DNA of 64,000 bases from the NCBI GenBank assembly GCA_965202585.1, contig OZ241828.1:49848001-49912000 (forward strand). Direction: 5' to 3'. Of this stretch, positions 25,935 through 45,028 are shown piece after piece. Source of the stretch: Thalia democratica. Its lineage: Eukaryota. The number at the start of each line of letters is the position of its first letter. The stretch's first letter is position 1. The notes under the pieces were generated by a model. It did not search any database and was not told where the DNA came from. It saw only the letters and a list, made by a program, of their open reading frames with translations. A program made the position numbers and the translations under genes.

Positions 25935-26773
25935 CTAAGAAATATCTAAATGTTCAAAATCTTCTTTATAATCTTCATTTTTTGTAATTTCAATTTTGTA
26001 TGAGACTTCCTTCGAGCTTGTTCTAAAGAGTAAAAAAAATAAACGTTCTGAAAATTTTAAACTTTTAAATTTTAATAAAGTAGTATTATACTGACAATTT
26101 AAAATAGAACTGACATAAAAGTTTTCAGTAGTATTTAGTCTAACAGCATTTCAATATTTAGTTTTATAGAGAACAAAATATTTTTTGTATGTTTCATTAC
26201 CGTATAATTTTTTGATTAAACACAAAATCTTATTAAAATAGTTAAACTTTTTTATCAACTACAAAAGTTTAATATTTTAAGTTTTTTGTACTGTTTCTTC
26301 GTTTTAAATTTGAAAATTCTAAGAATAATTGAAAAATCCTTAAAATTTATATAAAGAATCTAATCTATAGTATATCAAAACTACAATTTTTAATTCACAT
26401 GATTAGCTTTAAAATTAGTTGAAAAAAAATACAAACTATTGAAACTGACTTGTCAAAGCTGTTATCCAACACTAATGTGTAATATCCTATTTTATCTGGA
26501 ACGTAATGGATGATATCGACTCCTTTCATTTTCCTAGCGCAACAAACCACATCCAAATCACTTTCCTGTCATTTTTTCATAAATGTAAAACACTGCCCTG
26601 TTTTCTATAAAAATTTCAAACTGACCTCATTTTGGGAATAAGCGAGAGAAATGTATATCTCTCCTCGCACCTGCACCTTCCAAGCCACGTCAATGTGCGC
26701 CTGTTCAACCAGCAACGGGATGTGCAGAGTCTCTCCCTTCTTAACTGTTACTGCTTCTTCATTTTTCCTCGCA
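25935..26773 (-). CDS. FYCO1: GOLD-domain-encoding last three exons of FYCO1
   Basis: AVTVKKGETLHIPLLVEQAHIDVAWKVQVRGEIYISLAYSQNE / ESDLDVVCCARKMKGVDIIHYVPDKIGYYTLVLDNSFD / KTSSKEVSYKIEITKNEDYKEDFEHLDIS*; contains the G.Y.L..DNS...SK.V.Y signature. Confidence 0.8.
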
Positions 26774-29700
26774 CTGGTAGTTTGTTTGAAATTTATTTTA
26801 GCCTAGTTTTTTTAGACTAGAAAATTTAAGGCTTGAGTTATTTGCAGAGTAAAAGATTATAAAGTTCAAAAAATTGAAAAAAAATATTTTTGAGAACCAT
26901 GATTAAAATAACAAGTAGTACTTCCTCTATAAATATTTTTAAAAGTTTTTATTAACGCTCTTAAAGTAAATTTTTAGCTTAAACATGCTTTTATAAAAAA
27001 ATAAAACAAAACTACTTTGATTTAGTAGATGTTGGTACTAAATTTGAAACGAAATTTGACATCATATTGTAACTTCCATTTAATAGATCTGAAAATATTA
27101 TTTAGTAAAAAAATATTTTAATAATTTAATAAAAAGACTTTGTATCAAAAATTGTGCTTAGTAATACAAGGAGAGTAATATACGCTGAATATAAATAAGT
27201 TATTTTTGATTCTCTCTAAAATTGGTAGGTCTTGAGATTAAGTTACATAGTTAAGTTTAAACTATAACATTATTGTTCGTTTAACTAAAAATTTTTGATT
27301 CATCAAAAGTATTGAGTTACTGTGTAAATTTTTTACCATAATGAAGCTATCAAGGTATAAACGAAAAATAATTACCCATTGATGTGTAGGAATTGTTTTC
27401 TACTTTTTCATTGTTGGAATCTTCAGTTTTAGAGTTTTCTAGATGGTATTTGTCTTCATAAAGCTTGCTTTTGTCGCTACAAAAGTTATTATCAATTTTG
27501 ATAGTTACAAAGTATTTTTTCACAGATAACGAAACATTTTAAAGTCAGATGACTTACTGTAAGAGTTGTTGAGTTTTTTCAACAAGTTGTTTAATGTCAT
27601 TTTCGTTGCTTTTTATTTTTTCTTCAAAGCAAGTGAACAATAAACTAATCGATTTTTCTAGTTTTGAACTATTTTCATCTTTTTCAAACTTTGTGTAAAT
27701 TTTATTATTTTGGTTATTAAATTATGTTTCTAAAATGATATTTATTTAAAATAATAACACATAATAATTTAGTATAACGACTAAGCACTTTTTTTTAGTT
27801 TTCTGCCTTCAATAAAAAAAAGAAGTTAAAGCAATTAAAAATTGATTGATATAAATTTGTAATATATTTCACCGTTTATTCATTGCAAATACCTTTAACT
27901 CATGATATTTTTCGTCAACAACTGCATTTACTTTATACATTTCGTCTTCCAGTAATTCCAAACGTTGTTTGAAATCAATATTGTCTTTTATTTTTTCTTG
28001 AAAACATCCTACAATAACAAATAAAAACATTAACAATTATAAAACTGTTTTAATACGAAATACATAAAACAGCAACTACTCTGCGTTTTGTTCATTTCGG
28101 ATAATACCAGGCAAAACCTGCCTGGAAGTTCCGCTACTAGCTCTTTTTCATCCTGTACATTATCAAAACATTAGTTGGTTAAGTCTAAAATCAGTTCAAA
28201 AGATGAAAAACAAACCATTAGTTTCGACAATTCAGGCAATCGATCCTTGTCATTATCAGCCGACAAGTTTAAATGATCTCTGTTAAAAAAAAAACGGCTG
28301 ATAGATATAAAAAGCTAAAATACTTGTTTTATCAAGTAGACTATTCAAAAACTATTGATTAAACCATGACTGAAAAATTATATTGATTTGATAAATAATA
28401 TTTGATTTCTTAACTTAATAATTTTAAATTTTCATAATTTAGATTTGTCAGATATTAAACACTTACCTAAAATTTTCAAAGAAAGTCTGCAGAAGCTGAT
28501 GAACTGCAATAATAATATTATTTTGATCTTCATTTTCCTTTAGAAGTTGTACGATCTGAAAAAATATTTTCATTTGAATTTAAACTTTCTACAAAAACTT
28601 TAATGTTAATATGAGTTTTATGAGCAGTTTTTATATGGTAACTAATTGCATGAAGAATTTAACTAATTTTAACATTATAAAGTTTAAAATTTGTAAACAT
28701 TATCATTAAAAAGCTTATAAACCTGAAAATATCTGTCTTAACAATTTTTTTAAATTAAAAAATTTAAAATGTTATGACAAAAGTAAATAAGAAAATGTTT
28801 TTTTTTTCGTTTTTTTGTTAAATTTTTATATAAAAACTTTTTTTAATTTGGTACGACATATTTTTCTAAATGTTACAAAGAAAATTTTCTAAAAGTTTGA
28901 TTTATTTATCTCGAAAAACATAAGAAGAGATATATATTTAGTCATTTCTATTTATTCGCCGTTTTAGTTTTCTCCTCTCATAAGGAACATATTTTACTCT
29001 CCGACTTTAACCGATATATCTCAAAAATTATTTTGAATATTATAAAGCTATAAAAGCAACTTGTAGCTTAGATAAAAATCTAAAAAATAAGATCAAATTG
29101 TGAAAAAAGTGATGTACCCCTCCCCCTATGGAAACAAAAGACAAACTTTAAATATTTTTTTTCTCAGTTTAATTTTCAACTAATCTAATTTATCTGCACA
29201 GAAGAATATAACATATATGCCATTGCTGTTATTATGTAAGAAAGAAACTATATGTTAACATAACTTATTTTTTAGTAAAAAAAAGTTAACTAAGATTTTA
29301 GCAGTACTTTTTTACCAGATAGTCAGGGTTGCCACAGATCAAGCTTGAAAAATTTCCTAACTTTTTACTAAAATTTTCCTGACTTTTCTAAATCAAACTC
29401 TTAATTTAAACTGATTGTAAAATACATAATCAAACACTTGAAACTATACAAAGCTTTCAATCTTATTTTTATACAGGTTAAAACAACAGTTTTTTTGCTG
29501 AATTCAATCATCTAACTTCCATTACATCACTTGAACCACCTGTGTGTGATTGATTTATTTGCAATAAACAGCTCTATTATGAAAACAATTGTATTTATTA
29601 ACTTATAAACACGACTTGTCTGAAAATAGAAACAATATTTTAGCATTTCTTAACATAAAAGTAACTAAATAAACGTAAATACATATAATGAGCTTTTGAA

Positions 29701-44700: not shown

Positions 44701-45028
44701 CACAAAAAATTTTGAATAATATTATTTAGAATTGGAACGCCTAAAAGTTGAAGTTATGTTAATTTTCATGCCAATCTGACACATAACCAGTTTTAAGTAT
44801 AGTTATTGCAAAACTAAAAATATAAAATATTTTTCTTATAAAAATTAACTGAAAGCTTCTTGCTTTATACCAAACAAATATTAGTTAAATGGAATATAAA
44901 CTATAAACAAGTTCAGTGCATATCATATAATATTTAACACATTAGCTAATTCTTATATTTAAACATATTTAAGTCACCTTACCTTTGATATCTCTAATTA
45001 TTTTCGGGAGCTGCTCTATTGGATTCAT
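25935..45028 (-). CDS. FYCO1: FYCO1-like protein (RUN domain, long coiled coil, GOLD domain; ~1038 aa); no FYVE exon found
   Basis: Phase-consistent 25-exon chain (minus): 45028-44983, 44306-44231, 41315-41162, 40371-40130, 39769-39651, 39426-39367, 38263-38157, 37948-37769, 37123-37002, 36563-36224, 35658-35568, 35473-35376, 33691-33507, 31655-31595, 31046-30810, 28555-28467, 28279-28216, 28152-28080, 28008-27893, 27688-27558, 27476-27376, 27088-27016, 26773-26626, 26565-26450, 26022-25935. The N-terminus MNPIEQLPKIIRDIKDVIRSLVQFYENVKEPITDDNNCLHRLCAKLELVL...YWHWIYSCL...GRGRAFIRYCLVHQTLADSLQNC...[26 protein letters not shown] closely follows the FYCO1 RUN domain as I recall it (EPITDD, GRAFIRY.LVHQ.LAD.LQ, DLD..WPTFA). 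The C-terminus has a GOLD pattern (HIPLLVE...VAWKV...IGYYTLVLDNSFDKTSSKEVSYKIEI). Confidence 0.88.
29324..30280. mobile_element. TIR DNA transposon deletion derivative (CAGGGTTGCCAC termini, ~957 bp) with a frameshifted coding remnant, in a FYCO1 intron
   Basis: CAGGGTTGCCAC at 29324 and GTGGCAACCCTAG at 30268-30280; flanks GATAGT/TATAGT (5/6); TTCCTGA subterminal repeats. Minus-strand remnant ~30035-29810 reads MSAKKKRNEANKLWLDLEK...ADENDLSKMRQMVI, frameshift, FKRDADQMKETISSLDEEVEVLTKKRR. Confidence 0.75.
31883..31958. repeat. 29-bp inverted repeat with an 18-nt spacer (hairpin)
   Basis: CTTAATTCAACAAGTCCACATTTTATTTT (31883-31911) against AAAATAAAATGTGGACTTGTTGAGTTAAG (31930-31958); one mismatch. 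Confidence 0.85.
33898..34430. repeat. ~530-bp imperfect palindrome (foldback/MITE-like) in a FYCO1 intron
   Basis: Outer arms TAAAGATTCAAATGTAAATAGTC / GACTATTTACACTTGAATCTTTA; a perfect inner 17-bp pair CATTACAAAAACCGACA (34049-34065) / TGTCGGTTTTTGTAATG (34253-34269); a further pair TTATAAACATCTCG / CGAGATATTTATAA. Confidence 0.8.
34479..34573. repeat. Perfect 22-bp inverted repeat (hairpin, ~95 bp)
   Basis: TAAAGTGTACATAAGTGTAGTA (34479-34500) against TACTACACTTATGTACACTTTA (34552-34573). Confidence 0.85.
40130..45028 (-). CDS. FYCO1: RUN-domain-encoding exons of FYCO1 (first four coding exons)
   Basis: Exons 45028-44983, 44306-44231, 41315-41162 and 40371-40130 splice in phase and encode the RUN motifs listed above. 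Confidence 0.9.
42339..43088. mobile_element. Tc1/mariner (pogo/Tigger-like) MITE, 750 bp, TA target duplication
   Basis: TA|CAGTGCTTATTCACTTATCCGGAC ... GTCCGAATAAGTGAATAAGCACTG|TA; the 24-bp TIR matches 23/24, with tandem CACTTATCCGGAC subterminal motifs and no ORF. Confidence 0.9.

Follow-up and report, generated by a model that had tools for sequence, protein, structure and literature searches.

A FYCO1 orthologue without its FYVE finger in the pelagic tunicate Thalia democratica

A 64,000-nucleotide (nt) stretch of the Thalia democratica genome (assembly GCA_965202585.1, contig OZ241828.1; C4:49848001-49912000 of the 802-Mb assembly), referred to here as the window, carries a FYCO1-like gene on its minus strand that encodes a RUN domain, a long coiled coil and a GOLD domain but no FYVE finger. 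Sequence comparison identifies the gene as a FYCO1 orthologue by descent that, by architecture, lacks the name-giving feature of the family. It is the genome's single FYCO1 orthologue, it is transcribed and spliced correctly, and it is functional and under purifying selection. Human FYCO1 dimerises through its coiled coil, binds Rab7 through a conserved coiled-coil segment before the FYVE finger, phosphatidylinositol 3-phosphate (PI3P) through the finger itself and LC3 through an LC3-interacting region (LIR); its RUN and GOLD domains are dispensable for the overexpression phenotype (Pankiv et al. 2010; PMC2812517). We are confident of the structural and evolutionary statements on the Thalia gene made below. 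The best overall explanation of the data, which we consider likely, is a FYVE-less FYCO1 orthologue that would still be recruited by a Rab7-type GTPase and act as a coiled-coil motor adaptor without reading PI3P.

The sequence of the window is strongly AT-rich, at about 25% GC, and contains no N. Stop-free segments of its minus strand, from about 44310 down to 25938, encode RUN, coiled-coil and GOLD-like pieces, and the final model comprises 24 exons and 1,018 amino acids (aa) between an ATG at 45028 (start codon 45028-45026) and a stop codon at 25935-25937, with all 23 introns being GT-AG (Table 1). Its exon junctions were fixed by a frame-anchored search guided by P0161, a 1,020-aa protein from a 3,219-nt Logan contig of a marine metatranscriptome (locus L020), which is colinear with the window gene from Met1 to the stop and which is also present, as P0353, in the archive of the Joint Genome Institute (JGI). 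The coiled-coil state of the window protein was assigned from homology and composition. A preliminary description of the window, made from the sequence without database searches, had placed the gene at 25935-45028, and both limits are exact in the final model. Three introns that it had delimited between the coiled coil and GOLD (26774-27015, 27089-27375 and 27477-27557) are likewise exact and are seen as RNA contig joints. Its count of 25 exons is one too many, the likely source of the surplus being open frames in an interspersed repeat in intron 14. This repeat has 8,008 first-look candidates genome-wide (the scored copies being 80-86% identical), reaches a DNA contig depth of up to about 5e5, occurs in RNA contigs too and contains open frames that mimic exons. 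The frames at 29787-30078 were rejected as an exon because they lie in the repeat, because RNA joins 30810 straight to 28555 and because P0161 also skips them.

RNA support comes from three marine metatranscriptome runs, in which parts of the gene's 3′ 6 kb are represented by contigs placed on 25901-31900. The contigs show joints at 26022/26450, 26564/26625, about 26773/27016, 27088/27376, 27476/27558, 27688/27893 and 28555/30810, and a single contig of 3,080 nt spans all of the 3′ joints. Between joints 30810 and 27688, this contig carries 342 nt, the exact sum of four GT-AG exons (28555-28467, 28279-28216, 28152-28080 and 28008-27893). Three spliced sequence variants without FYVE were recovered, one identical to the window and the others about 95% and about 84% identical, and the 95% variant has the same 3′ joints as the window. 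One low-depth RNA contig is unspliced at 27980-28108, where it runs through exon 18, intron 17 (28009-28079) and exon 17, and represents either intron retention or pre-mRNA.

The preliminary description had reported no FYVE finger in the gene, and Pfam, a FYCO1-specific profile, a motif scan and the cysteine count all agree with it. The six-frame FYVE scan of the window that it had proposed gave no match: in a six-frame search of the whole genome, Pfam FYVE (PF01363) found 10 loci, none of them in the window, and even the closest on the chromosome of the window lies at a distance of about 30 Mb. HHCR and paired CxxC patterns do not occur in the window gene, in P0161 Pfam finds no domain other than RUN, even at E values up to 1, and a FYVE profile derived from 174 FYCO1 sequences matches neither the window model nor P0161. 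Applied to all 3,579 stop-free segments of the 64-kb window, the FYCO1-specific profile reached 7.4 bits at best (E 0.9), whereas single FYVE exons elsewhere in the genome, serving as controls, score 40-78 bits. From the coiled-coil motif that precedes FYVE in the family (aa 842-850) to the first conserved GOLD strand (IPLLV, aa 920), the window protein has 69 residues and no Cys, compared to 164-194 residues with 8-11 Cys in ascidians. All four ascidian orthologues carry RKHHCR and a Pfam FYVE match of 54-66 bits, and FYVE is also present in outgroup FYCO1 proteins. Given the predicted protein sequence, PI3P binding through FYVE is excluded.

Among 238 fetched GOLD-bearing relatives, FYVE is missing in only three: the window protein, P0161 and one crayfish gene model. 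The absence in the last of these, from Cherax (P0067; 968 aa, GOLD present), probably reflects incomplete annotation, and FYVE is among the precomputed Pfam domains of a second crayfish, Procambarus (P0214). The predicted isoform X3 of the sponge Corticium (P0090; 1,010 aa) has neither RKHHCR nor a FYVE recognised by Pfam, and the FYVE profile matches it only weakly, at 15 bits.

A FYVE exon could have been missed if it belonged to a rare isoform, lay outside the window or fell victim to an assembly error. What speaks for such an oversight, and against a gene without FYVE, is that the RNA evidence consists of assembled contigs, which lose rare variants, and that the comparison with reads covers the gene's 3′ 6 kb. 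We nevertheless judge it very improbable, as the window is free of N, none of its six frames over 64 kb holds a FYVE-like segment at anything near the control scores, the nearest FYVE of the chromosome is tens of megabases off, three RNA variants lack the finger, and the exon arithmetic given below fits an in-frame deletion.

The finger has not been relegated to a second FYCO1 gene either, as far as the genome search shows. A FYVE-bearing paralogue, which the preliminary description had advised looking for, was sought with the FYVE-GOLD part of Phallusia FYCO1, and no second FYCO1-type FYVE-GOLD gene was found in the genome: the GOLD part matches the window alone, and the FYVE part retrieves generic FYVE exons on other chromosomes. 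Nine RUN matches in the genome include no second FYCO1-type RUN. Pfam GOLD_2 has one strong locus in the genome, a gene of a single exon on C5 that is probably ACBD3-like. The genome's best match to FYCO1 FYVE, at C2:12.403 Mb, was considered as a split-off FYCO1 FYVE gene and rejected, being equally close to the FYVE domains of RUFY1, WDFY3 and EEA1 and having no RUN or GOLD nearby. The probable RUFY-type gene of the genome is at C8:40706025-40714218, where RUN exons (40706025-40707247) are followed within 8 kb, and on the same strand, by a FYVE exon (40714090-40714218).

The assignment to FYCO1, already made in the preliminary description, holds on four counts, namely best matches in both search directions, shared introns, the pre-FYVE motif and a FYCO1-type GOLD. 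When the main RUN exon was compared with 1.84 billion representative proteins, nearly all leading full-length matches were annotated as FYCO1, a few bearing automatic RUFY4 names, with Phallusia mammillata ZF(FYVE)-6 (71%) and Styela clava FYCO1-like (64%) at the top. P0161 matches the FYCO1 proteins of Phallusia, Clavelina and Ciona at about E 1e-115, followed by hemichordate and vertebrate FYCO1. RUFY1-4 share an N-terminal RUN followed by a coiled coil but end in FYVE and have no GOLD, whereas the window protein ends in GOLD, lacks FYVE and finds its best matches in FYCO1, not RUFY. In a maximum-likelihood tree, the window protein and P0161 form a pair (100/100 support) within a tunicate clade with Phallusia, Ciona and Clavelina, Styela falling outside (100/100); the stem branch leading to the pair is long (1.34). 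This is the accepted position of the thaliaceans, and the RNA is likewise of planktonic origin. The preliminary description had implied a cnidarian clade, but the closest relatives are ascidians, which keep FYVE. Because the gene nests inside the tunicates, whose nearest ascidian FYCO1 proteins have the finger, its loss appears to be secondary and specific to this lineage.

The likeness to ascidian FYCO1 (Phallusia, Ciona intestinalis, Clavelina lepadiformis and Styela clava) extends from a main RUN exon that is 61-71% identical, through a colinear coiled coil, to the pre-FYVE motif, a FYCO1-type GOLD and many intron positions and phases. In contrast, all four ascidian proteins have FYVE, RKHHCR and an acidic LIR of the form F/Y-E/D-E/S-I, none of which the window protein has, and they are about 160-225 aa longer. 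Beyond the tunicates, FYCO1 orthologues were matched in hemichordates, echinoderms, molluscs, annelids, arthropods and one sponge, which contradicts the claim that invertebrates have no FYCO1 homologue (PMC10391735). Literature searches yielded no relevant paper on tunicate FYCO1 or on FYVE-less FYCO1, so that the FYVE-less state is not documented in the papers searched.

The domains on either side of the missing finger are retained. Pfam RUN (PF02759) scores 34.5 bits on exon 4 alone (segment 40123-40392) and 39.2 bits on residues 41-160 of P0161. The pre-FYVE motif reads LLHDKSKLY, aligns with the motif of eight other FYCO1 proteins (family pattern L-[LI]-x-[DE]-K-D-x-L-W) and is interrupted by an intron at one and the same point in the window gene and in Clavelina. 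The string LYEDK was considered as a remnant of the LIR and dismissed, as it is the L-W part of this motif. Single GOLD exons gave no match in Pfam, the domain being spread over three exons. Because even the ascidian FYCO1 proteins match Pfam GOLD_2 weakly, below its threshold, GOLD was tested by a family-specific profile and by its predicted fold. The FYCO1-GOLD profile scores 44.9 bits on the window model and 59.8 bits on P0161 (best of 2,000 shuffles, 10.0). An AlphaFold2 model of P0161:880-1020, based on a 38-sequence alignment, has a predicted local distance difference test score (pLDDT) of 82.8, and with this model Foldseek retrieves human FYCO1 1359-1472 as its best match (template modelling score 0.72, E 2.4e-9) together with mouse FYCO1, and then the GOLD domains of SEC14L, ACBD3 and TMED. 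Profile and modelled fold together confirm a C-terminal FYCO1-type GOLD. A single-sequence structure prediction of the longer segment P0161:680-1020 reached a pLDDT of only 39.8.

The distal coiled coil contains an internal duplication. One copy, CFQEKIKDN-IDFKQ, opens exon 18 (27893-28006) and the other, CFEEKIKSNENDIKQ, lies in exon 19 (27560-27688), both on the minus strand; the two are identical at 11 of 18 positions (BLASTP E 1e-4). P0161 has both copies, and the intron pattern around the duplication differs from that of Clavelina.

How the finger was lost can be read from the intron positions. The FYCO1 exons of Clavelina were mapped on its genomic locus (L021), giving the phases 1,2,0,2,1,0,0,0,1,0,2,0,2,1,0,0,2,2,1,2,0,2, compared to 1,2,0,2,1,0,0,2,0,1,0,2,0,0,2,0,1,0,2,1,2,0,2 in the window gene. 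The two genes share the first seven phases (1,2,0,2,1,0,0) and the last four (1,2,0,2); after intron 8, which only the window gene has, its phases 0,1,0,2,0 match Clavelina again, as does the 3′ end (2,(-),1,2,0,2), and three 3′ introns stand in identical alignment columns. In a long-gap alignment, window intron 19 (27477-27557, phase 2, in His844) has the column and phase of Clavelina intron 17, which lies in a Leu of LLL/DKDALW. Window introns 20, 21, 22 and 23 pair with Clavelina introns 19, 20, 21 and 22 (phases 1, 2, 0 and 2), two of these pairs being in identical columns and one splitting an Asp codon in both genes. Clavelina intron 18, which splits the Arg of RKHHCR, has no counterpart in the window. 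Exon 20 of the window gene measures 101 nt, Clavelina exons 18 and 19 together 168 + 194 = 362 nt, and the difference of 261 nt corresponds to 87 codons. The simplest reading would be that one in-frame deletion in the genome removed about 87 codons: it would have begun within the first FYVE exon, ended within the second, taken the intron with it and left the fused exon 20. What weighs against one event is that the comparison is with the gene structure of one ascidian, Clavelina, and a stepwise loss is possible. Decay of FYVE in place, opposite exons 18-19, as a first automatic alignment had suggested, was rejected, as the profile alignment, the long-gap alignment and the intron phases all put the pre-FYVE motif at the boundary of exons 19 and 20. 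As both the window species and the species of P0161 have the gene intact in its FYVE-less form, the loss predates the split of their lineages.

The LIR is altered as well. The corresponding ascidian exon reads D/FEEIT in Clavelina and SYEEI in Phallusia and Ciona, and the LIR of Styela and vertebrates follows F-D-S/I-I-T-D-E-E-L. Window exon 21 reads D/LLNGSYNMM, the acidic F/Y-E-E-I core being replaced and Y-N-M-M left, and P0161 has SFNMV (F-N-M-V). To judge from these residues, the acidic LIR is not conserved in the window protein and its acidic context is lost. P0161 keeps a bare aromatic-x-x-hydrophobic core at the site, through which LC3 binding is possible. The genome holds ATG8 genes, and a complex prediction of its GABARAP-like ATG8 with P0161:850-905 scored 0.04, which is evidence for neither side. 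The preliminary description had proposed an autophagosome/lysosome transport adaptor that works without PI3P. With FYVE gone, independence of PI3P is a reasonable suggestion; the autophagosome part is doubtful, given that the acidic LIR is not conserved. At C10:12464573-12468247, the genome has a pair of ATG8-family open frames without introns, one on each strand and separated by about 3 kb; L022 covers the second. The stronger frame, with 119 aa and 162 bits, is GABARAP-like and has ...TFGFCF as its C-terminal end.

P0161 provides a measure of selection, as it is 81% identical to the window protein over the full length and shares its RUN-coiled coil-GOLD architecture without FYVE, but belongs to a different species or lineage, with 73-92% nucleotide identity from exon to exon. 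A codon alignment of the window model with L020 gives 0.90 synonymous substitutions per site (dS) and an overall ratio of nonsynonymous to synonymous rates (dN/dS) of 0.107. By region, dN/dS is 0.045 in RUN, 0.076 in the main coiled coil, 0.17 in exons 18-19, 0.12 in exons 20-21 and, as the highest value, 0.26 in GOLD. It is because of this overall ratio of about 0.11 against a related species that we regard the gene as functional. Exon 19 of P0161 also begins with eight additional residues, owing to an acceptor 24 nt upstream (27689-27712), where the window has AC for AG; window RNA uses the acceptor at 27688. Two metagenome scans for further pelagic relatives found none in the first and only a partial ascidian-like contig (L023) in the second. 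This contig (L023:3082-5745; JGI Ga0210059_1005664) holds RUN exons of an ascidian-like FYCO1, shares 84% identity with Phallusia over the main RUN exon and ends before the FYVE region.

These values also bear on whether the gene is a decaying pseudogene or is nearing loss. In favour of decay, FYVE and the acidic LIR have been lost, and GOLD is the least constrained region; against it, a frame of 1,018 codons is intact with canonical splice sites, its transcripts are spliced, and an orthologue at a dS of 0.9 is equally intact at a dN/dS of 0.11. Decay is thus hardly credible, and in our estimate even less so than an overlooked FYVE exon.

Table 1. Exons of the FYCO1-like gene of Thalia democratica and the repeat in its intron 14 (positions in the window)
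Feature	Position	Strand	Residues	Remarks
Exon 1	44983..45028	-	1-16	Start codon 45028-45026; model and blastn to transcript L020
Exon 2	44231..44306	-	16-41	Start of RUN region, PITDD motif
Exon 3	41162..41315	-	41-92	RUN domain
Exon 4	40130..40371	-	93-173	C-terminal half of RUN; Pfam RUN 34.5 bits; 71% identity to Phallusia FYCO1
Exon 5	39651..39769	-	173-213	
Exon 6	38157..38263	-	213-248	Coiled coil begins
Exon 7	37769..37948	-	249-308	Coiled coil conserved across tunicates
Exon 8	37002..37123	-	309-349	
Exon 9	36224..36563	-	349-462	Largest exon; acidic segment
Exon 10	35568..35658	-	463-493	
Exon 11	35376..35473	-	493-525	
Exon 12	33507..33691	-	526-587	Coiled coil; loose RNA contig end at 31657 reads into the end of exon 12
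Exon 13	31595..31655	-	587-607	
Exon 14	30810..31046	-	608-686	Coiled coil; RNA contig pieces and joint 28555/30810
Exon 15	28467..28555	-	687-716	
Exon 16	28216..28279	-	716-737	Exons 15-18 total the 342 nt of the RNA contig
Exon 17	28080..28152	-	738-762	Covered by the 342-nt sum
Exon 18	27893..28008	-	762-800	Starts with first repeat copy (CFQEKIKDN..KQ); RNA joint 27688/27893
Exon 19	27558..27688	-	801-844	Second repeat copy (CFEEKIKSN..KQ); ends in conserved pre-FYVE coiled-coil motif; RNA joints and profile alignment
Exon 20	27376..27476	-	844-878	FYVE deletion site (simplest reading); rest of LLHDKSKLY, then Cys-free polar linker; RNA joints 27476/27558 and 27088/27376
Exon 21	27016..27088	-	878-902	Counterpart of ascidian LIR exon (same phases, 1 then 2)
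Exon 22	26626..26773	-	902-951	GOLD part 1
Exon 23	26450..26565	-	952-990	GOLD part 2; intron column and phase as in Clavelina
Exon 24, coding part	25935..26022	-	990-1018	GOLD part 3; stop codon 25935-25937
Interspersed repeat of about 950 bp in intron 14	29324..30279			Non-coding for the FYCO1-like gene; skipped in RNA, absent from P0161

Compared with human FYCO1 (Q9BQS8), the window protein has RUN, coiled coil and GOLD in unchanged order and a recognisable counterpart of the Rab7-binding coiled coil before FYVE, but FYVE (RRHHCR) and the LIR at 1276-1294 of the human protein are missing or degenerate (PMC2812517). The window protein might still be a dimeric coiled-coil adaptor that links a membrane-bound small GTPase to a microtubule motor. 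The GTPase would most likely be Rab7, bound through the conserved coiled coil before the former FYVE site; PI3P would no longer be used for recruitment, and ATG8/LC3 probably neither. That the adaptor role has been kept without PI3P is a suggestion by analogy with the human protein, and we put it forward tentatively. Two results weigh against it. Deletion or mutation of FYVE abolishes the membrane recruitment of FYCO1 in human cells (PMC2812517), and a protein without the finger may never reach vesicles and may do something else. In addition, the pre-FYVE coiled coil (aa 822-875) matches the family profile only weakly, at 11.7 bits compared to at most 10.7 in 2,000 shuffles.

The principal rival takes up the first of these points and supposes that the fold has been kept while the job has changed, the protein having left endolysosomes and autophagosomes for another role of RUN and GOLD, for example as a cytosolic or Golgi-associated scaffold. 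Besides the requirement for FYVE in the vesicle recruitment of human FYCO1, the long stem branch of the lineage fits such a change, and the duplication in the distal coiled coil with its rearranged introns suggests remodelling. Yet RUN, the proximal coiled coil and the pre-FYVE motif are conserved with ascidian FYCO1, dN/dS is low along the full length, and no new domain has been gained. A changed job seems unlikely to us on this evidence, and a FYVE-less orthologue that would still be recruited by a Rab7-type GTPase as a motor adaptor is the explanation we prefer.

Mammalian FYCO1 is defined by its coincidence detection of Rab7, PI3P and LC3, and FYVE is essential for it to reach membranes (PMC2812517). 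In the Thalia gene, FYVE has been cleanly removed and the acidic LIR has not been conserved, and RUN, the coiled coil and GOLD have been kept under constraint. Constraint on a protein without FYVE implies that what is left has a function on which selection can act. If the readers of both PI3P and ATG8/LC3 have been lost, RUN, coiled coil and GOLD could even account for the ancestral and indispensable function of FYCO1, independent of PI3P and of the recognition of autophagosomes; we regard this as possible, if rather doubtful. The significance of the finding is moderate, domain loss being common in fast-evolving tunicates and function here being deduced from sequence. The gene offers a natural construct for asking what RUN and GOLD do and whether Rab7 alone recruits the adaptor. 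If the reading on the ancestral function is true, this pelagic tunicate would provide, ready-made, a separation-of-function allele for RUN and GOLD, two domains that are poorly understood.

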